NCBI GenBank assembly: GCA_977020255.1 | Contig: CDROCS010001760.1 | Location: 62,001-126,000, forward strand | From: Obrimoposthia wandeli | Lineage: Eukaryota | DNA length: 64,000 bases | Direction of reading: 5' to 3' | In this document: one piece after another, positions 9,605-63,962 of the stretch | Numbering within the stretch: position 1 is the first letter of the stretch | Layout of the letters: the number at the start of each line of letters is the position of its first letter | The notes under the pieces: generated by a model | The model's input: only the letters and a program-made list of their open reading frames with translations | What the model was told of the DNA's origin: nothing | Databases searched by the model: none | Position numbers and translations under genes: made by a program

Positions 9605-9616
9605 GATTTACCTCAA

Positions 9617-35266: not shown

Positions 35267-38200
35267 TTATTTATTGTTGATAATAAAACCATGGTTTTTA
35301 TTTGGTTTTCTGTTCCTACTTTGCCAAACTGCTCCACAGGCTATTAATAACAAAATGCCCGTTAAGCTATAATAGATGAAGTGGTTCGGCTCTACAGTTT
35401 GTGCGCTTTGTTTTTCCAACTTTTGTCCTTCAACTTGCTGCTCGGTTTTAGTTTCTGCAGCAGAATCGTCATTTGGCTTCGCATTATGATCAGCAAGTTG
35501 TTGGTTGTTCATTGCTTGCTGTGCTTTAGCGCTAGCGGCCATAGCTTCTAAAGTTTTTGCGGCCAGTGGCGCTAAACCAAAACCTTCGGCGAGTTCATTT
35601 ACATGGGCTTTTACCGCATCATTTAGAATGACTAAGTCATTGTTATTCACCACATCAATATATTGCTCAACAAGTTGTTTTAAACGCTCAGGGTCTGTTT
35701 GCCAATAGTCTTTACGTTCTGCTTCTAGCATGCGTTCCATCATACGGGCAAAGGCAGCGGGGTTAATGTCTTTAAACCATTCGTTGAGCTTCAGGTCGAG
35801 TTTGTCATTAACATAAATGTCTAGGTACTCATCCCATTGATCGTTTCTGATCAGGTTAGGATCAACCACTTGCCAGCCAAAAAAGTTATCCATTTTCGAC
35901 GCTAATGATACAGCACCAGAATAACCTTCTTTTTGTAACTCTTTTATCCAGCGAGGATGAAACATGCGAGTACGTAATTCTTTGGCAAGGAATAAACCTG
36001 CATCTTCGGCTTTGGCATTTTTAGCGTCACGCAAGTTGGCGATGACCATGTCAGGACTTTTACCATCAATGTTACGTACCGCTAAACTGAGTGCGCCAAA
36101 GTATTCAAACGGATCATCAGTACTTAACATACCAAATAGGTTTGACGAGCGAGCAAACATGGCGATGTCAGTGCCTGATAATTGTTTGGCGTAAAGTTGT
36201 ACTTCTTTACCGTCAGTATTTGCCGCTTTTTGTCCCCAACGGCTATTGTCAGCACCGAAGAAGTAGCCCATTTTACCCAGGTAAGTATCTGATATTTTTT
36301 TATCAGTTTCCCAAGTATCACTAGCCCATGCAGCGTCATCAACCCCTGTACCATAATCACCTGATTGATTTGAAAAAAGACGAATAGTTGATAAATACTC
36401 TGCTTCCTTCTCTTCGACACCTTCGGCCAGTAAGTCTGCTTTTACTTTTTCACTATTTTGCCAAATCGAGTTGTTGTCTTCTTTTAATGCCGCGACCTGA
36501 TTGACCGCTTTTGCTAGCATTTGCATGACATTAGGAAAAGCATCACGGTATAGACCTGTGGCTGACACCACGACATCTATACGTGGGCGCTTTAATTCGC
36601 TGTAAGGAATGATTTCGGTGCCAATAACTCGACCACTTTTACTCCATTTTGGTTTAACGCCCATGGCGTATAATACTTGAGATTCAAGTACCCCGTAGTG
36701 ACGCATAGTTTCAATTGACCATAACGAGAAGGCCATTTTGTCAGGGTAACGTTGATGCTTTTGGTAGTAATTAGCGATCATTTGTTCTGTGAGTTCTTTA
36801 CCTTGCTCGTAAGCTGCTTGGGTAGGAACGCGAGCAGGGTTAAAGCCAAACAGGTTATAGCCAGTTGCTAAAGATTCAGGGTGGCGTATTGGATCGCCAC
36901 CTGATTTAACGGGGATATATGTAGCACTCAAAAAATCAACCATGGCATCTAGCTCATGAATGCTAGCCATACTTTGATAAAGCTTTTGGCCGCGTGCAAT
37001 ATCCGCTTGCAGCTCGGTTGTTAGCTCTGTAAATGGCACTGGGCGCTGGGCTGATTGATCGTCAGCAGCGGTAATGTAGTTTTTAACGGTTAAATAACCT
37101 GATAAGCGAGTAATGTCGTTTTCTGTCGATGTATCTAAACCCTGCTTGGCATTATTTTCATCATTACCTTTACCATTTCCTTCAGCATGATTTTTCTCAT
37201 GGCCTTTCTCATGGTAAGTATGACTATGATTATCGCGGTCATCTTCATTATTTTCACCCGTTAAGCTAGTAGAGTAATATTGATGCTCAAACTCACTGGC
37301 CCTAGCAGTAAAGTCGCTACCTAGCATTTGTACTAAGGTTGAAATGGTCAGTGGCTGCTCTGGAATATAACCAAAGGTATGTAAACCTAATGGCTGATTA
37401 GCCGTTGCTAACGCTTCTAAGTGAATATGCAAGGCGTCGATAAACTCGTCAAACGCTTGGTCAATTTGCGCTTGTTCCCACGCTAGGTCTTTACAAATAT
37501 TGGTGTCAAAACATAACTGAGTTAATTGCACGGCCGTTTTTTGTTTTACGCCGCCTTGATCGAGTTGTTTATATTGATGCATTAATTCATGGAGATTTCG
37601 AATCTCACCTTCTAACCCAGCAGCAGCAAAAGGCGGGGTCATATGTGAAATAACTGTTGCACGTCCACGTCGTTTGGTTTGCATGGCTTCACCAACATCA
37701 TCAACAATAAATGGGTATACCACGGGCGTATCCCAAACCGCTAAATTACCTTGGTCATAGATAGATAAACCTCGTTCTTTTCCGCCTAAATACTCTTGTG
37801 AACCGTGGGTACCTAAATGTACTATCGCGTCTGACTGCCAGTATTCGCGGGCATAATAGTACGCGGCTAAGTAGAAATGATTGATGGGTACTAAACCTTG
37901 ATGATAAATCATATTCTCGTCATTTTTATCATCAGATCGAGGAGGCTGGCGCATGATCAGCATATTGCCGTTGCGAATGCGTGGCAGGATAAAAAAGTGC
38001 TTACCGTCTTTTTCTACCGCCATAAAATTGTCTTGTGGTTGCCCCCAATGGTCAGTTATTTTTTGCGTTAATTCAGTTGGCAGGGCATTAAACCAACTTA
38101 AATAGTCGTCAATTGGCATTAATTCGGCCAAGTCATGATCTAGCAATTCGGTTAATTGATAATCACGGTAGAACGGGTCGAGAATTTTCTTGGCGTTGGC

Positions 38201-39601
38201 AACAAAATATTCTGCATCACGTTCTGCGGTTTTGTAGCCTTCATTAGCTAAGCGCTGACTAATGGCTTCAATACTTTCAGGAATATTCATAAATGACGCA
38301 CCAACATCTTTGTCGCCCCAAACAAATACCGTTAATTTTTTATCTTGGTTGGCTTTATATTTTAAGTTAACGACATTAATCGCTTTATTTACTAGATGCT
38401 CGAGTTGGTAGTCGATAACTTCAACATTTTGGTCACTCATATTCATCGCGGCTACAATCATAGGATCAATCACGCCGGCGTTTTCTGGTAACACTAAAGT
38501 GAATGACATCATATTGGCGCTGACGCCTTGCATATCAGCTTCCCATGTTTCTTTATCACCAGAATAATAAGTCATTGCTTGCATGACAGGCACATTGAAT
38601 TTTTCAAACTCGACTTTACGTTGATTAGCCCAATGAATGTTACGAAAGTTGATGATCAAATCAACATCGGTTTCTTTATTCGGCTCTTGGCCATTAATCT
38701 GCCCAACAACCTGGCCATCTTTAGTGATTGGTAGTTGTAGCAAATGGCTATAGTCGCTGGTAACAGGACTTAGTTTAAAAAAGAAGGGGACAACGTAAGC
38801 ACCTTTGGCTTCTAGCTGGGCGATGGTGGCATCAATTAATTGCGTTTGCTCAGACTCTATTAATGCGCGTTGCATTAATATCGCTATTTTAGGTTGTTGC
38901 GGTTTAACTGGGCGGCGTTTTTTATATTCGGCTAAATCTTTGATAATAACATCGGGCAATGTTGGGTGATAAATGCCTTGGTGTGGAAAAATAATAGGCG
39001 CGGGCACTTTACTGGCGCCGGCGGTTTTACTAACATCAGAAGCTGTTGAGTTTGCTCGCGATGACACTGCTTGCGTTGCAGCTTCTTGCTGTTGGGTGCT
39101 AAAATTTTCTGCAATGTAGGACAGCATATTATCGAGATTACGACGGCCAGCGTTCATCCAATAATCTTCTAAAGTACTGGCATTATCAGCGCTTAACGCT
39201 TTATTGAGTTTAGCGTTTTGTAAATATTTAAAAGCAACGACGGCAGAATTTACTTGGCTGATTGCTTCGGCGTAGTTATCAAAAGCGGCACTGGCTTCTC
39301 GCACTGATACGGCATCGAGAATGACTAAATCATATTGATTAAACAAGCTGACCAGTGTGCTTTTTTGGTTAGTCGCGTCGAGCAATGACTTTGCTGACTT
39401 TTGTTGGATATGCCAAGTTGTGGCTGTTTTTTCTTTTGCGAGCTTTTTTAATAGCGATATTTTTGCCGTATTCGCATGAGCTGTGCTGATAAATAACACA
39501 CGATGTTTGGTGCTGTTTTCTGCCGCGGTGGCGAAAGCGTTATATAAAATACTGACGAAGCCGAGCAAAATTACGGCCAATGTGATTAATTTTTTTTTCA
39601 T
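35267..39601 (-). CDS. CobN/BchH-like chelatase-family protein with signal peptide and C-terminal TM anchor (HmuS/BtuS-like)
   Basis: HLGTHGSQEYLGGK, YPFIVDDVGEAMQTKRRG, RPRIDVVVSATGLYRD, ELRTRMFHPRWI; N-terminal leader and C-terminal hydrophobic helix with basic tail. Confidence 0.88.
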   Translation of the reverse strand: MKKKLITLAVILLGFVSILYNAFATAAENSTKHRVLFISTAHANTAKISLLKKLAKEKTATTWHIQQKSAKSLLDATNQKSTLVSLFNQYDLVILDAVSVREASAAFDNYAEAISQVNSAVVAFKYLQNAKLNKALSADNASTLEDYWMNAGRRNLDNMLSYIAENFSTQQQEAATQAVSSRANSTASDVSKTAGASKVPAPIIFPHQGIYHPTLPDVIIKDLAEYKKRRPVKPQQPKIAILMQRALIESEQTQLIDATIAQLEAKGAYVVPFFFKLSPVTSDYSHLLQLPITKDGQVVGQINGQEPNKETDVDLIINFRNIHWANQRKVEFEKFNVPVMQAMTYYSGDKETWEADMQGVSANMMSFTLVLPENAGVIDPMIVAAMNMSDQNVEVIDYQLEHLVNKAINVVNLKYKANQDKKLTVFVWGDKDVGASFMNIPESIEAISQRLANEGYKTAERDAEYFVANAKKILDPFYRDYQLTELLDHDLAELMPIDDYLSWFNALPTELTQKITDHWGQPQDNFMAVEKDGKHFFILPRIRNGNMLIMRQPPRSDDKNDENMIYHQGLVPINHFYLAAYYYAREYWQSDAIVHLGTHGSQEYLGGKERGLSIYDQGNLAVWDTPVVYPFIVDDVGEAMQTKRRGRATVISHMTPPFAAAGLEGEIRNLHELMHQYKQLDQGGVKQKTAVQLTQLCFDTNICKDLAWEQAQIDQAFDEFIDALHIHLEALATANQPLGLHTFGYIPEQPLTISTLVQMLGSDFTARASEFEHQYYSTSLTGENNEDDRDNHSHTYHEKGHEKNHAEGNGKGNDENNAKQGLDTSTENDITRLSGYLTVKNYITAADDQSAQRPVPFTELTTELQADIARGQKLYQSMASIHELDAMVDFLSATYIPVKSGGDPIRHPESLATGYNLFGFNPARVPTQAAYEQGKELTEQMIANYYQKHQRYPDKMAFSLWSIETMRHYGVLESQVLYAMGVKPKWSKSGRVIGTEIIPYSELKRPRIDVVVSATGLYRDAFPNVMQMLAKAVNQVAALKEDNNSIWQNSEKVKADLLAEGVEEKEAEYLSTIRLFSNQSGDYGTGVDDAAWASDTWETDKKISDTYLGKMGYFFGADNSRWGQKAANTDGKEVQLYAKQLSGTDIAMFARSSNLFGMLSTDDPFEYFGALSLAVRNIDGKSPDMVIANLRDAKNAKAEDAGLFLAKELRTRMFHPRWIKELQKEGYSGAVSLASKMDNFFGWQVVDPNLIRNDQWDEYLDIYVNDKLDLKLNEWFKDINPAAFARMMERMLEAERKDYWQTDPERLKQLVEQYIDVVNNNDLVILNDAVKAHVNELAEGFGLAPLAAKTLEAMAASAKAQQAMNNQQLADHNAKPNDDSAAETKTEQQVEGQKLEKQSAQTVEPNHFIYYSLTGILLLIACGAVWQSRNRKPNKNHGFIINNK

Positions 39602-39614
39602 AGTGTTTCTATCG

Positions 39615-39920
39615 CTACTCTTTTACGTAAATCATGCTGCCGTCTGCCATTTCATAGGCGGTACCTGCTTTTTTACCTGTGCCTGCGCCCGTTTTGCCAT
39701 CACTTTTAAAGCTTTCGATGGTATTACCTTTTTTAACGATAATTTCCATATTATCTTTACCTGCGTTTTTAATGACGGTGACGTCTTCAGCAAGAAATGG
39801 ATTTAATGGGTTTTGTGCAATAGCAATGAGTAAAGCGGCAACAAGCACTAGAAAAACATCGACTAAATTAACCACGGAAAGTGCTGGGTTAATTCCTTCG
39901 TCTTCATCAAGCAACCTCAT
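39615..39920 (-). CDS. DUF2149 protein (HmuV-like)
   Basis: NPALSVVNLVDVFLVL, GTAYEMADGSMIYV. Confidence 0.85.
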   Translation of the reverse strand: MRLLDEDEGINPALSVVNLVDVFLVLVAALLIAIAQNPLNPFLAEDVTVIKNAGKDNMEIIVKKGNTIESFKSDGKTGAGTGKKAGTAYEMADGSMIYVKE

Positions 39921-40515
39921 AATCTTGCTCCACAGCTTTTACAGGTAAGGTAAGTGTTTGCTGATTAATTACCGGCGCTTTGTTGTTGATCAGCGGCATT
40001 AGGGCTACGAGTTCTTCAACCATCCAACGTTTTTTTACTGAAGCGATCCAAAAAGTGATTGAGGCGATAATCAAACCAAAAATAACCGCAGAAAATGCCA
40101 CGATTAAATTTTCGCTGATACCTTGTATATTGCCATCGGCTAAGCTTTTTAATGCCGGACCCATCGGGATCATAGTCGCGATTAAACCTAACATAGGCGC
40201 TAAACGGCTGACATTGCGCACACCTTCAAGTTCTTTTAATGCTGCGACATCCAGTTGATCTTGGCTGATAGTGGGGATCTCATTAGCTAAGCTTGCCATA
40301 GGGTAGCCGTTTAATGTCAGATCAGGGTTACTGCCTAATCTGCTATTAAGTAATTGAATGAACGACTTATAGTGACGACGACGCTGCATTGTTTGACTAA
40401 AAAACTGGCCAGTAGCAAATAATGAATAAATAAAAAGTAAGGCGATTAGGCAAAGCACAGGAGCCATAAAGAAATCAGACAGCTGGTACATGGTTTGTTC
40501 GATCAGGGCGATCAT
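39907..40515 (-). CDS. MotA/TolQ/ExbB family protein (HmuU-like)
   Basis: RLAPMLGLIATMIPMGPAL, NLIVAFSAVIFGL. Confidence 0.88.
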   Translation of the reverse strand: MIALIEQTMYQLSDFFMAPVLCLIALLFIYSLFATGQFFSQTMQRRRHYKSFIQLLNSRLGSNPDLTLNGYPMASLANEIPTISQDQLDVAALKELEGVRNVSRLAPMLGLIATMIPMGPALKSLADGNIQGISENLIVAFSAVIFGLIIASITFWIASVKKRWMVEELVALMPLINNKAPVINQQTLTLPVKAVEQDYEVA

Positions 40516-40570
40516 AATATTTCCTAACAGGTAGTTAATTTAAGTGATAAACAATGAGGGTGAGTCAGGG

Positions 40571-40602
40571 ACTCAAGGCGCAGGAGAGGTTACGCCTTGA
40601 GT
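40571..40602 (-). other. Intercistronic stem-loop without U-tail
   Basis: ACTCAAGGCG...CGCCTTGAGT 10-bp stem just downstream of the hmuY-like gene. Confidence 0.6.
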
Positions 40603-40619
40603 ATGAGGTTTACTCAGGT

Positions 40620-41801
40620 TTACTCGCTAGCGGCTTTGCCAACAAGCTCAGTTACTTCATCAGCTCTAAAGCTGTAGTTACCAGAAGTAACGCTTTCATC
40701 GTAGTAGCTGGTTATTTGTAGTTTATGAGTGGCTGTCGGTGTTTTAACTAAATAAATGTCGAATTGCGACCATAATAAATGACCACCATTAAGTGCATAT
40801 TGATACCAGTCATGTGCAAACGATTTGAAAGCATTTTCAGAATAACTACTGGTTTTAAAGCCTAAGAAATCAGCTGATGCAGGATCGATAGCATCATAGC
40901 TATTGTCGAAGTCTTGTAGTGCTGTAGCGTCATCAGCAAGATTAATCTCGAAGCTTGCGCTAGTTTTATCTTCAGCACATGGCAAGCTAATATCCCAAGC
41001 GTCAGCCGACGTGACTTCTTGATTGGTATCAAAATCAATATAGACAGCGGTTACGTCACCCGAACAAGTTAAAGCCGTGTCAATTTCAAGTGTTTGTTCT
41101 GCTGCAAAAGCAACATCGCTGCTGCCTTGGTAAGCTGTTTGTAGGGTGATTTGCCCCATGCCTCGACCTACAGTGGTAATACTGGTTGCTCTGAATTTGG
41201 TATAAGCACCGTCTGAGTCAGAAATAAAGTACTTAGTATCAGCGGCAGTGACCACATGTGTGGTTGAGTTGTAGTCGTAGAAGCCGGCGATTATATTGGC
41301 GGTAACGTCACCGATAAAGTCTGTTTCACCCGTTGGAATATCGCTGGTGGTTACGGCTAAATAGTCAGCTAACTCAGTTTCCGCAGTGGCAGCAATAAAG
41401 CTGGTAGCAATAGGAGCGCCATCGGCATCAAAAAAGTCGCTGTTATTACCTGTTGAATAAGCCGTTACTGCATTTTCACTGTTTTGATTAAGATAAATGC
41501 CCGTACGTTTGAAGGCAATATCCCATACGGTGTTCGCTGCGGCTTCTTCTGTCGCTAATTCAACAACGGCTTTAGTATCTAAATCATAATATACGAGTAC
41601 TGGTTCTTTAGCAGTGCCAGTGCTATGTGGCCCACTAATATCACCTTGCGTTGGTGCTGTTGGAGTTGTAGGTGCAGTCGGTGTCGTTGGCTCAGGTGTG
41701 ATTTCCTTACTTGAACTACCGCCGCCACAAGCTGTTAGTAAAACGCACAGTGCTAAGCTGGTTAATTTGAATGTTGGGTTTAAATTTTTGTTAAGTCTCA
41801 T
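40620..41801 (-). CDS. HmuY-family lipoprotein, probably two HmuY domains
   Basis: Lipobox LTAC, Pro/Thr linker, WDIAFKR, FYDYNSTTH, WDISL, WYQYALNGGH...KLQITSYYD. Confidence 0.8.
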   Translation of the reverse strand: MRLNKNLNPTFKLTSLALCVLLTACGGGSSSKEITPEPTTPTAPTTPTAPTQGDISGPHSTGTAKEPVLVYYDLDTKAVVELATEEAAANTVWDIAFKRTGIYLNQNSENAVTAYSTGNNSDFFDADGAPIATSFIAATAETELADYLAVTTSDIPTGETDFIGDVTANIIAGFYDYNSTTHVVTAADTKYFISDSDGAYTKFRATSITTVGRGMGQITLQTAYQGSSDVAFAAEQTLEIDTALTCSGDVTAVYIDFDTNQEVTSADAWDISLPCAEDKTSASFEINLADDATALQDFDNSYDAIDPASADFLGFKTSSYSENAFKSFAHDWYQYALNGGHLLWSQFDIYLVKTPTATHKLQITSYYDESVTSGNYSFRADEVTELVGKAASE

Positions 41802-41819
41802 GTTGTTTTCCTATATTCC

Positions 41820-43793
41820 CTAAAATTTATAGCTAATGCCAGCACTTATGGTGCGGCTACTAACAGGTCTTGCATCAAATAAATTTTGACTGCTGGCAGT
41901 CGGTTTTTTGTGTTCATTGAAGATGTTGTCGACACTTATTCGCCACGACAGTTTGTCTGTTATGGCTTGATTAAATACCGTGTTAAAGGTGGTGTATTCG
42001 TTATTTTCTACACCTTGATAGCTGTCAGGTACGGCTTCACCTGCTTGATAAACCGCGTAGGCGATAATTTCGATATCGTAAGCGTCGATATCATAATTAA
42101 TGTTGAATTTTATTTGATGACGCGGACGGGAAAGTAGGCGTTGGTTATTTTCATCTTCGCTGGTTAAGTAGCTGTAATTTAATTGTGTTTTCCATTGACT
42201 AAAGGTCAGTTGCGTACTGATATCAACACCGTGAATTTTCGCTTCGCTGATGTTTTGATACTGATAAATAGATAAGCCGGTTGCTTGTGATTGCTCGGTA
42301 TCAATGATCGAGTCAATTAGGTTGTCAGTTTTTGAGTAATGGACACTAATATCACTACGTAAGTCGACTTTGTTATCCGCCAAAGTGGTGTTAAACGTTA
42401 AACTTGAGTTAAATGAATTTGCTGTTTCTGGTTCAAGGTCTTTGTTGCCTAATACCATGTAGCCTAAAGCGCTATGATCGAAGACATAGAAACGCTCTTT
42501 TAAGTTGGGTACACGATAGCTTTGACCTATGCCTGCACGCCATTGCAATTTACCTGCACCTAAAGCAAAGTTTTTCATTGTGCTAAGGCGTAAGGCGTTA
42601 TGCCAACCAAAATCTGAGTCATATTGGCTACGCATACCAGCAAGAATTTGATAGTCTGATTTTAGCCAATTACCTTGCACAAAAACTTCAACGCTTTCAC
42701 GGCTTTCATCATCGACTTCAATAACGTTTTCAACGGGTTTATCTTGTGTCAGTTGGTCAGCATGAACAACCGCCCCCGTAACTAGCTCAATATTGTTGAA
42801 TTGAAAAACTTTTTGGCCATTAATTTCAGACAGAATAATATGGGTGTCACGTAAGCTATTTGATTGACCACTGGTTTCTTGATGATTAATGTAGCGGGCG
42901 TTAAGCTGCCAAGGTGATTTTGGATGCTTAGTACTTTTTAAGCCCAAATCTATTTGCTGTTGATCTACGTCTGTTCTATAGAAAATAACTTCGCTTTGTC
43001 CAGGGATTATCGAACTATCACGGAGCTTTTCATCACTTAACCATTGGTATTTAATATTTGTAGCGAGATCTTGAAAAGTTTTATTCGTACTTACTGTAAT
43101 AAACTTTTTATCAACACTGGCCGCATCTTGGCTGACAGTATTACTATCGTAATCATAACCTTGGTCATCAATGATGAGCGCGTTAAGCTGGGTACGCCAA
43201 CCAGAAAAATTTTCCACTGCATTTATTTTTAGTGTGTGGTTTAAGTCGCCATCTTCAAGCGTATTGCCTTGATATTGACTGACATCATAATCAAGCTTTA
43301 GTGCCGGTTCGTCAGATTTATGGGTAATAATATTAATTACGCCCCCCATGGCTGAGCTGCCATACATAACCGAAGCCGCGCCGCGAATGATTTCAATTTG
43401 GGCAATATTACTGGCGGGAACTTGGTCTAGATCAGCGGATGAGCCAGTAGGGCTTATAATGGGTTGACCGTCAATTAAGACTAAAACATGGTCTCCATCA
43501 AAACCTTGCATTTGAATGTTATAGCCGTCTTTCACACTTCGTTTCACGACTACGCCAGGAATATAATTCAGTGCTTGCGCTAAAGTGCCATGACTAATTT
43601 TGGCAATGGTTTCACCGTTAATAACATCGACTAATACCGGAGAGTTACTTAAAAGTTTTGCGGTACGGGTGCCGGTAACAACAATGTGTTCAGTTTGACT
43701 TCTGTCTGGTGCTATTTGCGCTATGGTGTTCATGGGCAAAGTTAAAATGAGAGCGGATAGGCTAGCTTTAATATACATGTTTATCAATACCAA
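41820..43793 (-). CDS. TonB-dependent receptor (HmuR-like); start may be ATG 43778
   Basis: TonB box EHIVVTGT, IEIIRGAASVMYGSSAMGGVINIIT, LEPET, DNIFN, C-terminal Phe. Confidence 0.92.
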   Translation of the reverse strand: MVLINMYIKASLSALILTLPMNTIAQIAPDRSQTEHIVVTGTRTAKLLSNSPVLVDVINGETIAKISHGTLAQALNYIPGVVVKRSVKDGYNIQMQGFDGDHVLVLIDGQPIISPTGSSADLDQVPASNIAQIEIIRGAASVMYGSSAMGGVINIITHKSDEPALKLDYDVSQYQGNTLEDGDLNHTLKINAVENFSGWRTQLNALIIDDQGYDYDSNTVSQDAASVDKKFITVSTNKTFQDLATNIKYQWLSDEKLRDSSIIPGQSEVIFYRTDVDQQQIDLGLKSTKHPKSPWQLNARYINHQETSGQSNSLRDTHIILSEINGQKVFQFNNIELVTGAVVHADQLTQDKPVENVIEVDDESRESVEVFVQGNWLKSDYQILAGMRSQYDSDFGWHNALRLSTMKNFALGAGKLQWRAGIGQSYRVPNLKERFYVFDHSALGYMVLGNKDLEPETANSFNSSLTFNTTLADNKVDLRSDISVHYSKTDNLIDSIIDTEQSQATGLSIYQYQNISEAKIHGVDISTQLTFSQWKTQLNYSYLTSEDENNQRLLSRPRHQIKFNINYDIDAYDIEIIAYAVYQAGEAVPDSYQGVENNEYTTFNTVFNQAITDKLSWRISVDNIFNEHKKPTASSQNLFDARPVSSRTISAGISYKF

Positions 43794-43802
43794 TAGGAAT
43801 CT

Positions 43803-43823
43803 AAATACGAATGATTATCGATT
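43803..43823 (-). promoter_or_regulatory. Putative Fur box
   Basis: Minus strand AATCGATAATCATTCGTATTT contains the GATAATCATT core, directly upstream of the receptor gene. Confidence 0.6.
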
Positions 43824-44410
43824 GCGATCGTAATGGTAAGGAGAATAAATAGCAAGTGAATTCAACTGATTTTTATTCATACTATTGTAATACTTATTGT
43901 TTACTTAGTGATAATTAGGTGAGTACTGAGTAAATTTATTTGCATGGATATGAGCTAGTAAACTTAATATGACTGGGCTTGCGGGAGATAATTGTTATTT
44001 TTTATTGGTATTATGTTGCTTTGATGTGGTCGAATGTAAAGAAACGTAAAGTCGCGAACTTAGTGTCTTTATAGTGACTCTATATTGCCGGTAAGTTTAT
44101 TGAATAAGCTCTTTAAGTCAGAATTTTAGCCCCTTATTTTATTTTAAACTGAGTATTCTTGAACATTGGCAGTGAATAGAGATCATTAGGTGGAGTAGTT
44201 TATGCAAAATAATAGTCAGCTTAAAGTTATAAACCCATGGGTTAATCAAGTCTATTTTGTGGCTTTGTTTATGCTGTTGGTCGCCATTGCTTTGGTCGCA
44301 TAAATCACAACGACAATGGCATTTACTCGCATTATTCAAGCAAGTTACATTTTTTGCTGATAGTTCTATCTGCATATCAAATCGGATGATTCTTCTGATC
44401 ATCTACTGCT

Positions 44411-44472: not shown

Positions 44473-44556
44473 TTTTAGTGATTAGCATGCTGGTGATGTT
44501 AGTGCATGTGCATTAGCAAAACTTACTTCACTAAAAACAACACTAAAGGAAGCATT

Positions 44557-46140
44557 ATGAACTCGACCTGGGTTTCACTTTCAGCTTTGTCATCTTTTTT
44601 ACTCTCTAGCGTTGCTGTCGCTGGCGTTTTACCTAATGTGCAAAAAGATAGCCAATGGTTTGTTGATGGTCAACAAACAGTTATGGCTAAAACAAAACTT
44701 ACAACACGCAATAAAGCAAAAAATGTCATTTTATTTGTTGGTGACGGTATGGGGCTTTCCACCTTAACAGCAGCACGTATTTTAGACGGGCAAAATAAAG
44801 GCCAGTCGGGTGAAGAGGGCTATTTAAGCTTTGAAGAGTTTCCTTATTCTGCACAAGTAAAAACCTACAATGTGGATGCACAAACGCCAGATTCTGCCGG
44901 CACCATGACGGCAATGATGTCAGGTGTTAAAACTGATGTTGGGGTCATTGGCGTTGACGAAGATATTGAGCGTGGTGATTGTTCAACCGTCAGTGGTAAT
45001 GAATTAGTCACCTCATTAGAAGTTGCTGAGATTAAAGGCCTATCGACGGGTATCATCTCAACGGCACGTATAACCCATGCAACACCGGCAGCAACTTATG
45101 CAAAATCAGCTGATCGTAATTGGGAAGATGTTTCTGATATGCCAGAAGCTGCGGTAACTGCCGGCTGTGTTGATATTGCTACTCAACTTATTGATTTTGA
45201 AAAAAACCTCGAAAAACGTTTTCCAGGTGTTGATGTTGACGGGATTGAAGTGGCATTTGGTGGTGGTCGTCGTCACTTTTTACCTAAAGATGCCAGCTTT
45301 AATAGCGCCGATGCAGTTAGTGCTATTGAAGGCGATCGCACTGATGGCGTAGATTTAACGGCTAAATGGCAAGAACAATATCAAAATGGTAAATATATTA
45401 TCGACCAAGCGGGCTTTGATGCCATTGATGCTAGCAGCACCGAACGGGTGTTGGGCTTGTTTAATGAGTCTCATATGCAATATGAAGCTGACCGTAGTAA
45501 TGATATTGCCGGTGAGCCTTCGTTAACGCAACTTACTAGTAAAGCCATTGATATTCTTGATAATAATGACAAAGGTTATTTTCTTGTTGTTGAGTCAGGG
45601 CGTATTGACCATGGTCATCATGCCGGCTCTGCTTATAACGCTTTAAGCGATACCATCGAATTCTCTAACGCGGTACAAGCCGCTATCGATAGCACTAACC
45701 CTGAAGAAACTTTAATTTTAGTGACGGCTGATCATAGTCATGTCTTTACGATTGCCGGCTATCCAAAACGTGGTAATCCTATTTTAGGCAAAGTGGTTAA
45801 TGTTGGGGCAACTGAGCCTGCTTTAGCGGGTGATGGCATGCCATACACCACTGTTGGTTATACCAATGGTAAAGGTTTTAGAAACTTAGTAAACGAGACT
45901 AATGCTGATTTAAGCTATAACGATGATGCGTTAGCCGGTCGCCAAAACTTAGCAACGGTTGACACGACAACAACGGGTTTTCATCAAGAAACAACTGTAC
46001 CACTGAGCTCTGAGACCCATGCGGGCGAAGATATTAGTTTACATGCCTCGGGACCTGGTGCGCATTTGGCGCAAGGCGTTATCGAGCAAAGTGTCGTGTT
46101 TCATCTCATCAATCAATCTCTTGGCTTAATTGCTAAATAA
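44557..46140 (+). CDS. phoA: Alkaline phosphatase 1 (secreted); start placed at ATG 44557
   Basis: FVGDGMG, PDSAGT (Ser nucleophile), ESGRIDHGHH, TADHSH, ETHAGED; AAGGA RBS; signal peptide. Confidence 0.92.
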   Translation: MNSTWVSLSALSSFLLSSVAVAGVLPNVQKDSQWFVDGQQTVMAKTKLTTRNKAKNVILFVGDGMGLSTLTAARILDGQNKGQSGEEGYLSFEEFPYSAQVKTYNVDAQTPDSAGTMTAMMSGVKTDVGVIGVDEDIERGDCSTVSGNELVTSLEVAEIKGLSTGIISTARITHATPAATYAKSADRNWEDVSDMPEAAVTAGCVDIATQLIDFEKNLEKRFPGVDVDGIEVAFGGGRRHFLPKDASFNSADAVSAIEGDRTDGVDLTAKWQEQYQNGKYIIDQAGFDAIDASSTERVLGLFNESHMQYEADRSNDIAGEPSLTQLTSKAIDILDNNDKGYFLVVESGRIDHGHHAGSAYNALSDTIEFSNAVQAAIDSTNPEETLILVTADHSHVFTIAGYPKRGNPILGKVVNVGATEPALAGDGMPYTTVGYTNGKGFRNLVNETNADLSYNDDALAGRQNLATVDTTTTGFHQETTVPLSSETHAGEDISLHASGPGAHLAQGVIEQSVVFHLINQSLGLIAK

Positions 46141-46163
46141 CCTGCTAATCGAAAGGAATTAAC

Positions 46164-47996
46164 ATGAAAACAGTAAAACTTTTATCTTTAGCCGTGTTGG
46201 CGGCATTAGCCGGTTGTGGTGGTGACGATGGTACCAATGGCGCTAATGGTAGCAATGGTGTTAACGGCAGTAGCGGTATCAATAGTCTGATCAGCCAAAC
46301 ATTATTAAATGTTGGTAATGCGCAATGCCTGAATGGCGGCGTACAAATTGATTCTGGCCTAGATGATGATGGCTCTGGTGTATTAGATGCTGGTGAGATT
46401 GATGCGACTGAATTTGTTTGCTCACCCACCTTAACACAAGCACAAGGTTCAGCATTGGCGGCGACAACAAATAACCTCTGGTATGAACAAGGACAAAGTG
46501 TTTTAGCGCAAGCTGAGCTTAATGCGCAATCTTTGGTGAATACTAAAGGTAAAGCGAAAAACGTGATTCTATTTGTTGGTGACGGCATGGGAATTTCTAC
46601 CGTGACCGCAACGCGTATTTTAGCCGGACAAAAGTTAGGTAAAATGGGCGAAGAACATCAACTGAGCTTCGATAAACTGCCGTTTTCTGGTTTTGCAAAA
46701 ACTTATAATGTTGACGCACAAACACCGGACTCTGCGGGCACGATGACGGCGATGATGTCAGGCGTGAAAACCGATGTTGGTGTTATTGGTGTCAGTGAAG
46801 CGATTAGCCGAGGTGATTGTTCTACGGTATCAGGCAACGAGTTAGTCACCGCCTTAGAATTAGCTGAAATAGCGGGTAAATCAACGGGAATAATTTCTAC
46901 TGCCCGTATTACTCATGCTACGCCGGCGGCAACTTATGCAAAATCAGCGGACCGAAACTGGGAAGATATTTCTGATATGCCAGCCGCTGCTGTTACGGCT
47001 GGTTGCGTTGATATTGCTTCACAGTTAATCAGTTTTGAAAGTGATATGGAAAGTAAGTTTGCTGGCGCTGATGTTGATGGTATCGACGTGGTATTAGGTG
47101 GTGGAAGACGACACTTTTTACCAAAAGACGCAGCATTTAATAGTACTGATGCGTTAAGTGCTATTGAAGGAGATAGAACAGATGGCCGAGATTTAACCGC
47201 AGAATGGAAAGCACAGTATCCGGCGGGTAGCTATGTGATGGACCAAGCAGGCTTTGACGCTGTTGATGCTAACACCACATCGCATTTGTTTGGTTTATTT
47301 AATGAATCGCATATGCAATATGAAGCTGATCGTGAGAATGATATTGCCGGAGAGCCTTCTTTAAAAGAAATGACCAGTAAAGCAATTGATGTGCTTGATA
47401 ACAACGAAGACGGTTTTTTCCTGATGGTTGAAGCCGGCAGAATTGATCATGGTCATCATGCTGGTAGTGCTCATGGCGCGTTAACTGACGCGATGGCTTT
47501 TGCTGATGCGGTACAAGCGGCTGTTGATGCTACTGACCCAGAGGAGACCTTAATTATTGTTACCGCCGACCATAGTCATGTATTTACTATGGCTGGCTAT
47601 CCTAAACGTGGTAATCCTATTTTAGGCAAAGTAGTGAGTGTCGGTAGTACAGAGCCAAGTCTAGCAAGCGATGGTATGCCTTATACCACTTTAGGTTATA
47701 CCAACGGTAAAGGTTTTAGAGACTTAGGAACAGAAACAAATGCTGATGCTGGTTATAACGGTGATGCCGTTACAGGACGTGTGGATTTAAGTGCTGTTGA
47801 TACCACTTCTGCTGGTTTTCATCAAGAAGCCTTAGTACCCATGGGCTCTGAAACGCACGCGGGTGAAGATGTTGGTATTTATGCATCAGGGCCAGGGGCA
47901 CATTTAATTACCGGTACGAATGAGCAAAGTGTCATTTTTCATGCCATGGATTATGCCGCTGATTTAGTCACCAAGGCTGAGCAAGCACTAAACTAA
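46164..47996 (+). CDS. phoA: Alkaline phosphatase 2 (lipoprotein with Gly-X-Y spacer)
   Basis: Lipobox LAGC, DGTNGANGSNGVNGSSG, and the same catalytic motifs as paralog 1. Confidence 0.92.
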   Translation: MKTVKLLSLAVLAALAGCGGDDGTNGANGSNGVNGSSGINSLISQTLLNVGNAQCLNGGVQIDSGLDDDGSGVLDAGEIDATEFVCSPTLTQAQGSALAATTNNLWYEQGQSVLAQAELNAQSLVNTKGKAKNVILFVGDGMGISTVTATRILAGQKLGKMGEEHQLSFDKLPFSGFAKTYNVDAQTPDSAGTMTAMMSGVKTDVGVIGVSEAISRGDCSTVSGNELVTALELAEIAGKSTGIISTARITHATPAATYAKSADRNWEDISDMPAAAVTAGCVDIASQLISFESDMESKFAGADVDGIDVVLGGGRRHFLPKDAAFNSTDALSAIEGDRTDGRDLTAEWKAQYPAGSYVMDQAGFDAVDANTTSHLFGLFNESHMQYEADRENDIAGEPSLKEMTSKAIDVLDNNEDGFFLMVEAGRIDHGHHAGSAHGALTDAMAFADAVQAAVDATDPEETLIIVTADHSHVFTMAGYPKRGNPILGKVVSVGSTEPSLASDGMPYTTLGYTNGKGFRDLGTETNADAGYNGDAVTGRVDLSAVDTTSAGFHQEALVPMGSETHAGEDVGIYASGPGAHLITGTNEQSVIFHAMDYAADLVTKAEQALN

Positions 47997-48927: not shown

Positions 48928-49893
48928 CTAACTGCCGCTATATAAATGCTTTTTAGTAATTTGACTTTCGGCTAAGGCTCTATTGCTAGGTAGCTCTATT
49001 GCGCCATCGAATAAATAAATTACTTTTTCGCCGCGCTCTGCTAGATCTAAAGCATGCTGAACGTTGATTAAGATATTTGAAGCTATGTCTTGAGGGAACT
49101 TACTGGCGTCGCGTCTGATATATTCAATGATATCGGTATTTACGGCTTGGTCGTAAAACACCGCATCAGCAAATTGCATTTCTCGGTGTGCGCTAAGTGT
49201 TAAATTATCAGGGTTACCATCACCGGTATGAATAAAAACTATTTCACCTTCAGGTGGCGGTGTTTGTGTTTGTAAACTGGCGATGAGTTGTTGCTCAGCT
49301 TGGGTCGTTTTACCTTCTAGAATAGCTTGCCCAATACTGCCACGTAACGTGCGTTCCCAAAAACTACGTCGGTCACGTATGCTTTTTACCCGAGCTTTAA
49401 CATGATCTCTAAATTTAAAAGAAAAATCAGCTAACTTGCCATAGCCATAGGGTAAGGTTTTTTCGATTTGCTCGCGTAACATGCGTAACAATATTGGCGC
49501 ACTGCCTGAGCTCGACATGGCAATGATCATAGGAGCACGGTCAATAATCGCTGGCGTTATATAATTACAAAGCTCAGGTTGGTCGACAACGTTAGTTAGT
49601 AACTTTAAGTGTGTACTTTCTGCTGCTACAGCACTATTAACTTCACTACTGTCTGTTGCGGCAATAACAATATTACAACGTTCAAGGTGACCTGGTTGAT
49701 AGTTATGTTTAAGCCACGTTAATTGATTTACATTTACTAGGCGTTCAACACTACTATTAAGTGTTTCAGACATTATGGTGATGTTCGTTGTCGACTTTAA
49801 TAATAAGTCTATTTTACGGGCCGCAACTTCACCGCCACCTATTATCATGGCGTTAATATGTTTGGCGTCTAGATAGATAGGAAAATACTTCAT
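48928..49893 (-). CDS. cysG: CysG-like precorrin-2 dehydrogenase/ferrochelatase with degenerate, truncated methyltransferase domain
   Basis: MKYFPIYL, GGGEVAARK, NVVDQPELC, GSAPILLR; C-terminal TGDGNPD in place of GAGPGD. Confidence 0.8.
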   Translation of the reverse strand: MKYFPIYLDAKHINAMIIGGGEVAARKIDLLLKSTTNITIMSETLNSSVERLVNVNQLTWLKHNYQPGHLERCNIVIAATDSSEVNSAVAAESTHLKLLTNVVDQPELCNYITPAIIDRAPMIIAMSSSGSAPILLRMLREQIEKTLPYGYGKLADFSFKFRDHVKARVKSIRDRRSFWERTLRGSIGQAILEGKTTQAEQQLIASLQTQTPPPEGEIVFIHTGDGNPDNLTLSAHREMQFADAVFYDQAVNTDIIEYIRRDASKFPQDIASNILINVQHALDLAERGEKVIYLFDGAIELPSNRALAESQITKKHLYSGS

Positions 49894-59252: not shown

Positions 59253-59589
59253 TAATTGAAGAGTTTGATCATGGCTCAGATTGAACGCTGGCGGCAGGCT
59301 TAACACATGCAAGTCGAGCGGTAACAGAGATAGCTTGCTATCTGCTGACGAGCGGCGGACGGGTGAGTAATGCTTGGGAATATGCCTTTGAGTGGGGGAC
59401 AACAGTTGGAAACGACTGCTAATACCGCATAACGTCTACGGACCAAAGGGGGGGATGCTTCGGCACCTCTCGCTCATTGATTAGCCCAAGTGAGATTAGC
59501 TAGTTGGTAGGGTAATGGCCTACCAAGGCGACGATGGGTAGCCGGCCTGAGAGGATGAACGGCCACACTGGGACTGAGACACGGCCCTT

Positions 59590-59632
<43 letters not shown>

Positions 59633-59753
59633 CAAGCCTGATCCAGCCATGCCGCGTGTGTGAAGAAGGCCTTTTGGTTGTAAAGCACTTTAAGCGAGGA
59701 GGAAGGTTAGTAGTTAATAACTGCTAGCTGTGACGTTACTCGCAGAAGAAGCC

Positions 59754-59792
<39 letters not shown>

Positions 59793-60014
59793 GGGCAAGC
59801 GTTATCCGGAATCACTGGGCGTAAAGGGTGCGTAGGTGGTTTGTTAAGCAAGATGTGAAAGCCCCGGGCTCAACCTGGGAACTGCATTTTGAACTGGCAA
59901 GCTAGAGTTTTGTAGAGGGTAGTGGAATTTCCAGTGTAGCGGTGAAATGCGTAGAGATTGGAAGGAACATCAGTGGCGAAGGCGGCTACCTGGACAAAGA
60001 CTGACACTGAGGCA

Positions 60015-60072
<58 letters not shown>

Positions 60073-60167
60073 TCAACTAGCCGTCTGTGGTCTTGAACCG
60101 TGGGTGGCGTAGCTAACGCGCTAAGTTGACCGCCTGGGGAGTACGGCCGCAAGGTTAAAACTCAAAT

Positions 60168-60217
<50 letters not shown>

Positions 60218-60294
60218 CAACGCGAAGAACCTTACCATCCCTTGACATCCAGAGAAGAGACTAGAGATAGACTTGTGCCTTCGGGAACTCTGTG

Positions 60295-60326
<32 letters not shown>

Positions 60327-60332
60327 TGTGAA

Positions 60333-60367
<35 letters not shown>

Positions 60368-60408
60368 ATCCTTATTTGCCAGCGCGTAGTGGCGGGAACT
60401 CTAAGGAG

Positions 60409-60461
<53 letters not shown>

Positions 60462-60554
60462 CTTACGGGATGGGCTACACACGTGCTACAATGGCAAGTA
60501 CAGAGGGCAGCAATACCGCGAGGTGGAGCGAATCCCACAAAGCTTGTCGTAGTC

Positions 60555-60605
<51 letters not shown>

Positions 60606-60616
60606 TAGATCAGAAT

Positions 60617-60673
<57 letters not shown>

Positions 60674-60732
60674 GGTTGCAAAAGAAGTGGCTAGTTTAAC
60701 CCTTCGGGGAGGACGGTCACCACTTTGTGATT

Positions 60733-60763
<31 letters not shown>

Positions 60764-60796
60764 CCTAGGGGAACCTGGGGTTGGATCACCTCCTTA
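59253..60796 (+). rRNA. rrs: 16S rRNA (apparently mosaic)
   Basis: AGAGTTTGATCATGGCTCAG to GGATCACCTCCTTA. Confidence 0.98.
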
Positions 60797-60899
60797 TCTT
60801 GAAGTAAAACAGCTTAATGAGAACCTCGGTTCTACGAGTGTTCACACAAATTACATGATAACAAATTAGAAGAAGAAAACGTAAACCCTAGTATAATAA

Positions 60900-60975
60900 G
60901 GGGCTATAGCTCAGCTGGGAGAGCGCCTGCCTTGCACGCAGGAGGTCAGCAGTTCGATCCTGCTTAGCTCCACCA
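60900..60975 (+). tRNA. tRNA-Ala(TGC)
   Basis: GGGGCTATAGCTCAG...TTGCAC...TTCGATC...CTCCACCA. Confidence 0.96.
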
Positions 60976-61009
60976 CTTATTATACAGTATCGATGTTTTG
61001 ATACGATGC

Positions 61010-61025
61010 AGGTCTGTAGCTCAGC

Positions 61026-61058
<33 letters not shown>

Positions 61059-61086
61059 GGCAGTTCAAGTCTGCCCAGACCTACCA
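61010..61086 (+). tRNA. tRNA-Ile(GAT)
   Basis: AGGTCTGTAGCTCAG...CTGATAA...TTCAAGT...CCTACCA. Confidence 0.96.
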
Positions 61087-61515
61087 ATCTTCTTCACTAA
61101 AGAAAGAAACATTTTCTCTCTTTATAAGAGACCAAATTAAGTTACGCTTTTAAAATGAGATGATTTAAGTTTGGTTTTTTAAACCACGATTTATGCCGAA
61201 TGCGTGCATTAATTGAATTCTTTAACAATCTGGAAAGCTGATATAAATACCGGTATTTATATGGCAAACACGGTGTCGCGCTGTTGTTTGTAAATTATAA
61301 ATACCAAGCTGTTATTAATAGGAATATCGCCTGTTAATAATGGTGATTACGGGTCCTCCTCGGAAACGTAATCAACCCGGTAATAAATCGTAAGATTTGT
61401 TACCACTCTTATTCAAGACACACTTTGTGTGCGTGAAAATGTCAGACTTTACAATTGCGTTGGTTTAGTCACCAATGTGTACTTTGTTTTCTTTCGAGAC
61501 TACTTAGGGTTGTAT

Positions 61516-61960
61516 GGTTAAGTGACTAAGCGTATGTGGTGGATGCCTTGGCAGTTAGAGGCGATGAAGGACGTGTTAATCTGCGAAAAGCTCAGGTGAG
61601 GTGATAAAAACCGTTATAGCCTGAGATGTCCGAATGGGGAAACCCACCCGTCGTAAGGCGGGTATCATTAAGTGAATACATAGCTTAATGAGGCGAACCG
61701 GGAGAACTGAAACATCTAAGTACCCCGAGGAAAAGAAATCAACCGAGATTTCCTTAGTAGCGGCGAGCGAACGGGAATTAGCCCTTAAGTGGTTTGTAAG
61801 TTAGTGGAATCTACTGGAAAGTAGAACGATACAGGGTGATAGTCCCGTACACGAAAATAAACTTATCATGAAATCGAGTAGGTCGGCACACGTGAAACGT
61901 TGACTGAACATGGAGGACCATCTCCCAAGACTAAATACTACTTAGTGACCGATAGTGAAT

Positions 61961-61991
<31 letters not shown>

Positions 61992-62480
61992 GGAAGGGGA
62001 GTGAAATAGAACCTGAAACCGCATACGTACAAGCAGTGAGAGCCGGATTTAGTCCGGTGATTGCGTACCTTTTGTATAATGGGTCAGCGACTTATATTCT
62101 GTAGCAAGGTTAACTGAATAGGGGGAGCCGTAGCGAAAGCGAGTGTTAACTGCGCGTTTAGTTGCAGGGTATAGACCCGAAACCCGGCGATTCTACCCAT
62201 GGGCAGGTTGAAGGTTGAGTAACATCAACTGGAGGACCGAACACACGTATGTTGAAAAAAATGCGGTGATGACTTGTGGTCGGAGTGAAAGGCTAATCAA
62301 GCCGGGAGATAGCTGGTTCTCCCCGAAATCTATTTAGGTAGAGCCTCGCACGAACACCATTGGGGGTAGAGCACTGTTAAGGCTAGGGGGTCATCCCGAC
62401 TTACCAACCCTTTGCAAACTCCGAATACCAATGAGTGATATGCGGGAGACACACTACGGGTGCTAACGTCCGTTGTGAAG

Positions 62481-62513
<33 letters not shown>

Positions 62514-63385
62514 AAAGTACTAGTTAAGTGGGAAACGATGTGGAAAGGCATAGACAGCTAGGAGGTTGGCTTAGAAGCAGCCATCCTTTAAAGAAAGCGT
62601 AATAGCTCACTAGTCGAGTCGGTCTGCGCGGAAGATGTAACGGGGCTAAACTAGTCACCGAAGCTGCGGATTTGAACTTAGGTTCAAGTGGTAGGGGAGC
62701 GTTCTGTAAGCCGTTGAAGGTGAATTGAGAAGTTTGCTGGAGGTATCAGAAGTGCGAATGCTGACATGAGTAACGATAAGGGGAGTGAAAAACTCCCCCG
62801 CCGAAAGACCAAGGTTTCCTGTCCCATGTTAATCAGGGCAGGGTAAGTCGGCCCCTAAGGCGAGGCGGAAACGCGTAGTCGATGGGAAACAGATTAATAT
62901 TTCTGTACTTCTATATATTGCGAAGGAGGGACGGAGTAGGCTAAACAAGCACGGCGTTGGTAGTCCGTGTGAAAGTATGTAGGTGGTTGTCTTAGGTAAA
63001 TCCGGGACTTCATTAACACTGAGATACGAGACGAGACTCTACGGAGTTGAAGTTGTTGATGCCATGCTTCCAGGAAAAGCTTCTAAGCTTCAGATATATA
63101 GGAACCGTACCCCAAACCGACACAGGTGGTTAGGTAGAGAATACTAAGGCGCTTGAGAGAACTCGGGTGAAGGAACTAGGCAAAATAGTACCGTAACTTC
63201 GGGAGAAGGTACGCTCTCTAGTGTGAAGCCCTTGCGGCGTAAGCACAGGAGAGTCGAAGTAACCAGGTGGCTGGAACTGTTTATTAAAACACAGCACTGT
63301 GCAAAATCGAAAGATGACGTATACGGTGTGACGCCCCCGTGCCGGAAGGTTAATTGATTGGGTTAGTTTTCGGACGAAGCTCATG

Positions 63386-63480
<95 letters not shown>

Positions 63481-63863
63481 CATGGCCACACTGTCTCCAC
63501 CCGAGACTCAGTGAAATTGAAATTGCGGTTAAGATGCCGTATACCCGCGGCTAGACGGAAAGACCCCGTGAACCTTTACTATAGCTTGACAGTGAACATT
63601 GCTCCTACATGTGTAGGATAGGTGGGAGACTATGAAACCATGTCGCTAGATGTGGTGGAGTCTACCTTGAAATACCACCCTTGTATGCGTGATGTTCTAA
63701 CCTAGGGCCCTTATCGGGCTTGGGGACACTGTCTGGTGGGTAGTTTGATCAGGGGCGGTCTCCTCCTAAAGAGTAACGGAGGAGCACGAAGGTTGGCTAA
63801 GTACGGTCGGACATCGTACGGTTAGTGCAATGGCATAAGCCAGCTTAACTGCGAGACAGACAC

Positions 63864-63962
<99 letters not shown>

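Follow-up and report, generated by a model that had tools for sequence, protein, structure and literature searches.

What would a marine bacterium do with a chelatase-like protein that appears to be exported from the cytoplasm and is encoded behind an outer-membrane receptor? This question is raised by a stretch of 64,000 nucleotides (positions 62,001 to 126,000, forward strand, of contig CDROCS010001760.1 in assembly GCA_977020255.1, deposited for Obrimoposthia wandeli), hereafter the window, in which a TonB-dependent receptor, a HmuY-fold lipoprotein, a MotA/ExbB-like protein, a DUF2149 protein, and a large CobN-family protein are encoded in a single operon. The host is a cold-marine gammaproteobacterium. 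To our knowledge, heme dechelation has been shown so far only for anaerobic gut Bacteroidota. The hmuYRSTUV operon of Bacteroidota (as in Porphyromonas gingivalis and Bacteroides thetaiotaomicron) is built from similar parts. HmuS of that operon is a proven heme dechelatase (PDB 9d26; PMC12583661). The complete six-gene hmu operon has been reported from Bacteroidetes only, with HmuS and HmuV homologues in Proteobacteria mentioned in passing (PMC10100974). An original prediction, made from the letters of the window, proposed that the operon removes the metal from heme or another metalloporphyrin in the periplasm. Heme-iron extraction survives from that proposal as the best-supported reading, on the evidence of Fur-like boxes, the heme receptors of sister loci, and the HmuY fold, while the dechelation step, together with its substrate, direction, and energy coupling, is what we infer from comparative analysis. 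Specifically, we give a probability of roughly 55% to the reading that the system would release iron in the periplasm from heme, or from a closely related iron tetrapyrrole, by an HmuS-like mechanism. More secure, and very probable, is the wider claim that the operon serves to acquire iron in one form or another. We favor heme-iron extraction because the regions upstream of 35 homologous loci are enriched in Fur-like boxes, because sister loci use heme receptors and lack a nearby heme importer of the ABC (ATP-binding cassette) type, and because the modeled lipoprotein matches heme-bound HmuY with a Z-score of 15.8.

The operon occupies the minus strand from 43825 to 35191, with a Fur-like box at its start and a terminator at its end, and all its features described below lie on that strand. 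Genes were assigned by scanning open reading frames (ORFs) of the window against Pfam and NCBIfam (19 ORFs between 28482 and 54996), and all five were found where they had been predicted, each with its family confirmed. The receptor gene (43778-41820) encodes 652 amino acids from its ATG, with a signal peptide and the Plug and barrel domains of Pfam. It is followed by the genes for the HmuY-fold lipoprotein (41801-40620; 393 amino acids, lipobox LTAC), the MotA/ExbB-like proton-channel protein, which resembles HmuU (40515-39907; PF01618, 35 bits), the DUF2149 protein, which resembles HmuV and has a single transmembrane helix (39920-39615; PF09919, 97.5 bits), and the CobN-family protein (39601-35267; 1444 amino acids, PF02514 at 940 bits), a candidate periplasmic dechelatase with predicted export and a predicted C-terminal anchor. 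These consecutive genes are spaced by 18, 104, -14, and 13 nucleotides, and a strong intrinsic terminator (35216-35191; an 11-bp stem with five G-C pairs and a T run) closes the operon.

All the parts for which the locus had been called hmu-like are therefore in place, that is, an HmuY fold, a receptor, a MotA-like protein, a DUF2149 protein, and an exported CobN-like protein, and these are the parts common to the Bacteroidota operon. Five of the six hmu genes are present, and their order is R-Y-U-V-S instead of Y-R-S-T-U-V. The claim of a rearranged order without hmuT also held, as BLAST searches with HmuT gave no match in the window or in the comparative set of 80 related loci from GTDB genomes; a HmuT hidden elsewhere or fused was ruled out on the same searches. 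Orthology of the receptor with HmuR of Bacteroidota was rejected, since the two share about 25% identity, no better than the receptor shares with CirA-like receptors. The five-gene arrangement is kept in about 35 genomes and is thus not a chance juxtaposition. The closest relatives of the operon proteins belong to Colwellia/Cognaticolwellia (87-88% identity). In RNA libraries (two metatranscriptomes of marine origin and a pair of transcriptome runs), contigs with 90-95% identity to the window span the receptor-to-DUF2149 part of the operon (compared region 39600-44100); these are contigs only, for which DNA carry-over is possible.

The identity of the CobN-like protein was addressed through its topology and phylogeny. 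Its N-terminus, MKKKLITLAVILLGFVSILYNAFA-TA, is a hydrophobic signal finishing in AFA-TA, and its C-terminus is a hydrophobic helix (35324-35380) followed by the basic tail QSRNRKPNK. In a hydropathy scan of 54 superfamily members, HmuS (14 sequences) and the proteobacterial relatives likewise had the N-terminal signal, the C-terminal helix, and its basic tail, and none of these occurred in CobN or BchH from genuine cob and bch operons. Under the positive-inside rule, the bulk of the protein is predicted to lie in the periplasm. Among solved structures, its best relative is HmuS 9d26 (419 bits, versus 340 for ChlH and 313 for CobN), and the best NCBIfam CobN model, NF004644, reaches 1155 bits, under its cut-off of 1248. 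A tree was built from 35 proteobacterial relatives, the homologue from a Runella plasmid, and HmuS genes from metagenomes (hmu loci on bacterial contigs from the human gut, one of which encodes a protein essentially identical to the solved B. thetaiotaomicron HmuS), with CobN from cob operons of Ralstonia, Sphingobium, and Marinobacter and BchH from the photosynthesis cluster of Tateyamaria as outgroup. All proteins linked to MotA and DUF2149 formed one clade apart from this outgroup (support of 97 in the Shimodaira-Hasegawa-like approximate likelihood ratio test, SH-aLRT). This clade divides into a monophyletic HmuS (SH-aLRT 100) and a sister group (SH-aLRT 99) that comprises the Runella protein, one Burkholderiaceae sequence, and all marine proteobacterial proteins. 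The window's protein is nested deep within the proteobacterial sister clade, outside HmuS. A word search aimed at PA1923 of Pseudomonas, for which the most distant relative (L076) served as seed, brought up freshwater Betaproteobacteria and methylotrophs only. The original prediction had held that this protein is not a true CobN, which is borne out both by its branching outside CobN and BchH and by a predicted periplasmic topology that cytoplasmic CobST could not serve; the phylogeny that it had called for separates the protein from bona fide CobN and places it beside HmuS, not within it.

The second line of evidence comes from the lipoprotein, which scores 44.8 bits against the HmuY family PF14064 (cut-off 27). 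The lipoprotein was modeled with AlphaFold2 from 19 homologues (mean predicted local distance difference test, pLDDT, of 85), and alignment of the model with heme-bound HmuY (3h8t) by VIA-align gave a Z-score of 15.8 and a root-mean-square deviation of 3.2 A over 162 of 182 residues. Z-scores of 12-15.8 were obtained for every one of the eight solved HmuY-family structures, the next match reached 3.7, and Foldseek agreed. Residues 50-384 make up the HmuY fold, into which an additional beta domain of some 150 residues is inserted; the lipoprotein is twice as long as HmuY of Bacteroidota. H182, H341, C246, and C275 are invariant among the 19 homologues.

The third line of evidence is regulatory. 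The Fur-like box reported upstream of the operon is present 28 nucleotides before the receptor ATG (GCAATCGATAATCATTCGT, 43825-43807), and a Fur-like motif recurs upstream of homologous loci. Specifically, we scanned the 150 nucleotides upstream of the receptor gene in 35 such loci. The best 19-bp match to the Fur consensus agreed at 13 or more positions in 31 of the 35, versus 8.6% of control windows and 12% of shuffles, and at 15 or more in 26% of loci versus 0.3% of controls. When one mismatch was allowed, the core TGATAATNATT was found in 24 of 35 loci versus 283 of 4996 control windows. In sister loci whose receptor is of the heme or CirA-like type, Fur boxes match at up to 18 of 19 positions (17-18/19). 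Iron control is accordingly a well-supported prediction for the clade, and a moderately supported one at the window's own box, where it draws mainly on the clade-wide pattern. Two other regulators were considered and rejected. For Zur, the best consensus matches (13-15 of 23 positions) were scattered, and matches stayed at background level both here and in sister loci. For vitamin B12, Rfam models at gathering and permissive thresholds found no cobalamin riboswitch upstream of the window operon, and none was found before the system in 12 related loci. A Maricurvus locus (L057) does hold a cobalamin riboswitch at 360-513, on the minus strand and pointing away from the cluster, as well as a cyclic di-guanosine monophosphate riboswitch (c-di-GMP-I) at 13276-13366 on the plus strand, directly after a CobN-like gene.

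The comparative set also revealed which receptors accompany the system. About 35 loci have the same receptor and HmuY-like pair, from the genera Colwellia, Psychrosphaera, Thalassotalea, Pseudoalteromonas, Bowmanella, Catenovulum, Algibacillus, Teredinibacter, Agarilytica, and Marinagarivorans. In about 19 others, which include Methylophaga, Kangiellaceae, Emcibacter, Kordiimonadaceae, Maricurvus, and Cellvibrionaceae, a heme/hemoglobin-family receptor replaces this pair, and a few have a CirA-like receptor (e.g., L068 and L067). The original prediction placed the locus in a marine gammaproteobacterium; it is no oddity of one such host, as the system is widespread in marine Gamma- and Alphaproteobacteria. 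The two receptor architectures are interleaved in the tree, which means that the receptor module was exchanged repeatedly. Two heme-type receptors scanned with NCBIfam exceed the curated cut-offs (scores of 379 and 344 bits in L030, 523 and 414 bits in L022); the former has both the FRAP and the NPNL box, the latter only NPDL. No heme ABC importer and no HemS or HutZ was found beside the three sister loci whose flanks were scanned (L030, L022, and L041), which fits with processing in the periplasm. In L041, genes for an imelysin (Peptidase_M75) and a di-heme oxidoreductase (DHOR), a second iron-related pair at 74-2244, adjoin the cluster of heme receptor, TonB-ExbBD, and CobN-like genes.

Taken in order, the HmuY-fold lipoprotein would capture the ligand and the receptor would carry it into the periplasm, where the CobN-family protein, held at the inner membrane through its C-terminal helix, would take out the metal and keep the ring whole, as does HmuS of Bacteroides. 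The MotA-like and DUF2149 proteins, a stator-like pair with a membrane Asp, would most likely couple the proton gradient to the CobN-like protein, standing in for the cytoplasmic AAA+ partners (ATPases associated with diverse cellular activities) of true chelatases. Such a route would share with classical proteobacterial heme uptake (HutA/HemR/PhuR) a Fur-controlled, TonB-dependent entry of heme, and the receptors of sister loci belong to the same family. Classical uptake, however, relies on a binding protein, an ABC importer, and HemS, HutZ, or a heme oxygenase, none of which is encoded at the window locus or the sister loci examined, and the route proposed here would free the iron in the periplasm and spare the ring.

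HmuU and HmuV are currently assumed to be the motor of the receptor. The MotA-like protein of the window is about 29-30% identical to HmuU, and the DUF2149 protein about 43% identical to HmuV, of the B. thetaiotaomicron loci (L103, L202). Their genes are mutually adjacent in the 80 GTDB loci and adjoin or lie near the CobN-like gene where the contig allows. An NLVDV stretch in DUF2149 is at least 95% conserved among 74 sequences, and its Asp (Asp21 in the window) stands at the start of the membrane helix; ExbD, TolR, and MotB likewise have a conserved Asp at the start of their membrane helix. In nine sister loci, a dedicated TonB-ExbB-ExbD set lies directly upstream of the MotA-like and DUF2149 genes, so this pair is unlikely to be simply the motor of the receptor. 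This suggests that it serves the CobN-like protein instead. A candidate contact site is the motif VEGQKLE (35390-35420, about residues 1387-1397), which is nearly invariant in the proteobacterial clade, lies just before the C-terminal helix in an otherwise low-complexity linker, and is absent from HmuS. We tentatively extend this to a broader proposal, possible though with the odds against it, in which the pair is a stator driven by protons and supplies the CobN-like protein in the periplasm with energy, and the three together form a portable engine, run by the proton-motive force, for metal extraction or insertion. Such a stator would replace the AAA+ ATPase subunits because the periplasm has no ATP.

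Several observations weigh against the release of heme iron by an HmuS-like mechanism, and the most serious concern the active site. HmuS is defined by a Met-rich insertion in domain IV and by His-1209 in LSLDHxxEFMGG, with Glu-1212; its heme ligands in the head and neck are Met-79 and His-254 (HGR motif), and its catalytic His-538 lies in HFG(T/A)HG (PMC12583661). The catalytic motif is kept in the window protein as HLGTHG (residues 595-600, 37802-37819), invariant in its clade, and His599 corresponds to His-538 by alignment. This motif does not discriminate HmuS, since an HxGxHG-type motif is conserved across the superfamily (PMC12583661). The second motif reads LSTDDPFEYFGA, with DDPFEYFG at residues 1162-1169 (36095-36118). 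Here Glu1166, the equivalent of the Glu that partners His-1209, is retained, and Asp1163, invariant across the clade, replaces His-1209 as in the cobaltochelatase CobN. Asp-His is found at this site in HmuS and BchH, which act on porphyrins, versus Asp-Asp in CobN, which acts on a corrin. The clade of the window has the CobN-like Asp-Asp, and it is mainly for this reason that the substrate is uncertain. In addition, Met-79 aligns with Val98 (AVS) and HGR with RNI; the alignment is weak in this region, and an invariant His323 two residues beyond RNI might be a shifted ligand. In place of the Met-rich insertion there is a low-complexity one (about residues 775-830, 37112-37279) with six His, one Met, and 20 Asp or Glu. 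Across the clade it holds 0-25 His (at least three in 30 of 35 sequences) and 0-3 Met, versus up to 25 Met in HmuS. On these motifs (His-1209, Met-79, and the Met-rich insertion) and the tree, strict membership in HmuS was rejected; the HmuS-type identity originally proposed gives way to that of a sister clade.

Three genomes, of Psychrosphaera, Catenovulum maritimum, and Maricurvus, have two CobN-like paralogues at the locus (L013, 8932-13089 and 17347-21405; L053, 4543-8775 and 8908-13143; L057, 4883-8956 and 8833-13152), in tandem in two of them. One paralogue is of the GM[LI][ST][ST]DDPFEYFG type, like that of the window, and the other of the A[LM][LM]TNDDPFQYFGG type. These pairs recall BtuS1 and BtuS2 of Bacteroides fragilis.

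Other points against the heme reading lie outside the active site. The best NCBIfam models for the window receptor, TonB-hemin (174 bits) and TonB-B12 (168 bits), both remain under their cut-offs, that of TonB-hemin being 317 bits (TIGR01785/TIGR01786 family), and the FRAP and NPNL heme boxes are replaced by a degenerate YRVP..H435..NKDL. The profile alignment of the lipoprotein to HmuY reaches only the N- and C-terminal strands, leaving the heme ligands unmapped. The window's own Fur-like box matches the consensus at only 12 of 19 positions. The chemistry of HmuS was shown under anaerobic conditions, with NADH (reduced nicotinamide adenine dinucleotide) and membranes, and the cold-marine habitat of Colwellia is likely oxygenated. 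The HmuS sequences in our tree were gathered by the motif of their own family, so that intermediate forms may have been missed. Finally, homologous modules respond to zinc (PA1922-25; PMC4542158), sit among nickel genes of a hydrogenase (Runella), or lie behind B12 riboswitches (Bacteroides), so that neither the metal nor the ligand follows from the module alone.

The alternative that survives best is an iron-regulated uptake of a non-heme iron chelate, in which the HmuY-fold protein would bind the ligand and the CobN-like, MotA-like, and DUF2149 trio, as an all-purpose engine of metal release in the periplasm, would strip iron from a siderophore-like or other organic complex that the receptor takes up. 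The sister loci L068 and L067, which pair the trio with CirA-like, catecholate-type receptors and Fur boxes, agree with this alternative, as does the window receptor, which is not clearly a heme receptor, and the His- and acid-rich insertion resembles a cation-binding loop. We nonetheless regard it as unlikely. As far as known, the CobN superfamily handles tetrapyrroles only, and most sister loci have canonical heme receptors. The HmuY fold, in turn, is known only from heme-binding proteins, with divergent copies that possibly bind corrinoids (PMC10100974).

A distinct possibility is the uptake of zinc, cobalt, or nickel, with the CobN-like protein acting on the metal or a metallophore. Its closest precedent is PA1922-PA1925 of Pseudomonas aeruginosa, which rises 44- to 147-fold under zinc limitation through Zur (PMC4542158, PMC9431628). 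This operon likewise unites a receptor and CobN-like, MotA/ExbB-like, and DUF2149 genes in a gammaproteobacterium (PMC4542158, PMC9431628). It differs in lacking an HmuY-like gene, in its order (receptor-CobN-MotA-DUF2149), in a receptor described as CirA-like, and in its control by Zur rather than Fur. The original prediction needs correcting here, as the gene set of the window without HmuY was already known from this zinc-responsive, not iron-responsive, operon. A second precedent is the plasmid pRUNSL01 of Runella slithyformis (L081), where receptor, MotA-like, DUF2149, and CobN-like genes (3122-11156) lie between hypF and hypC-hypD-hypE, together with a gene for a 208-amino-acid protein annotated as urease accessory protein, without an NCBIfam match. 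This suggests a version of the module that supplies nickel to the hydrogenase. The Asp-Asp pair shared with the cobalt enzyme CobN and the His-rich insertion point in the same direction. On the other hand, no Zur-like box was found here or in related marine loci, where Fur-like boxes are enriched instead, and the scanned window ORFs (28482-54996) yielded no gene for handling nickel, cobalt, or zinc. Moreover, the operon includes a protein with the HmuY fold, and the receptors of sister loci are of the heme type. We consider another metal improbable.

Less probable still is the salvage or remodeling of corrinoids, with the CobN-like protein inserting or removing cobalt as proposed for BtuS1-type operons. 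The window receptor scores almost equally on the BtuB and hemin models, Asp1163 is CobN-like, and hmu-like operons with B12 riboswitches and divergent HmuY and HmuR exist in Bacteroides (PMC10100974). The BtuS1-type operon of B. fragilis also resembles that of the window in its exported CobN-like, MotA-like, DUF2149, and receptor genes. Those operons, however, are preceded by cobalamin riboswitches and sit with btu and cob genes. At the window there is a Fur box instead of a riboswitch, and the earlier statement that it has no cobS, cobT, or other B12 genes agrees with our scans, which found no cob or btu genes among the 19 ORFs (28482-54996).

The weakest alternative, in which the protein is the large subunit of a cytoplasmic cobaltochelatase or Mg-chelatase and its partners CobST or ChlID are encoded at another site, is very improbable and was rejected, since the nearest NCBIfam model and the public label of the homologues ("cobaltochelatase subunit CobN"), as well as the PF02514 fold, the HxGxHG motif, and the Asp-Asp pair, are outweighed by the tree position of the protein, its signal peptide and anchor, and its operon partners (receptor, lipoprotein, and stator pair), whereas the large subunits of CobNST, BchHID, and ChlHID are cytoplasmic, lack signal and anchor, need AAA+ partners, reside in cob or bch operons, and form the outgroup of the tree.

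Heme-iron release by an HmuS-like mechanism thus remains our preferred reading, for a system that is not simply a copy of hmu. The two systems share their parts list and topology, with membrane anchors predicted at both ends of HmuS and of the window protein and with the catalytic His and the Glu partner of His-1209 in common. The system of the window differs from hmu in its clade, its active-site residue (Asp for His-1209, besides Val for Met-79), the chemistry of its insertion, its gene order, its regulator, and the ecology of its host, a cold-marine gammaproteobacterium in which the operon bears a Fur-type box; the VEGQKLE motif is a further addition. We found no published description of a Fur-linked, HmuY-containing proteobacterial operon.

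Further features of the window were noted upstream of the operon. The 700-bp gap that precedes the Fur-like box holds an 87-amino-acid ORF (44139-44402, minus strand) that has no family match and is unlikely to be a gene. Next come two alkaline phosphatase genes in succession (44506-47996, plus strand; 544 and 610 amino acids), the second with an N-terminal DUF7151 domain, which run divergently from the operon. A CysG-like ORF of 321 amino acids (48928-49893, minus strand) has the NAD-binding and dimerization domains and about the first third of the tetrapyrrole methylase domain, and may be truncated or a siroheme synthase without most of the methylase. A ribosomal RNA operon (59253-64000, plus strand) comprises 16S, two transfer RNAs, and a 23S gene cut by the window end.

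Heme is a major iron pool in the iron-starved ocean, and marine bacteria are thought to use it by ABC import followed by cleavage of the ring. If the proteins of this clade act like HmuS, heme iron would be acquired in the periplasm, with no cleavage of the porphyrin ring, by many Gamma- and Alphaproteobacteria of the sea, among them Colwellia, Psychrosphaera, Thalassotalea, Pseudoalteromonas, Catenovulum, Methylophaga, and Teredinibacter and the families Kangiellaceae and Cellvibrionaceae. The name "cobaltochelatase subunit CobN", which thousands of database entries in this clade carry, is probably wrong. The unexplained zinc operon PA1922-25 of Pseudomonas gains a mechanistic frame, and the comparison raises the idea that a MotA/ExbD-like stator may drive an enzyme of the chelatase family. 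Should the portable engine proposed above exist, evolution would have joined one engine to different receptors and regulators: to heme and Fur in marine Proteobacteria, heme in Bacteroidota, zinc and Zur in Pseudomonas, nickel in Runella, and corrinoids behind B12 riboswitches.

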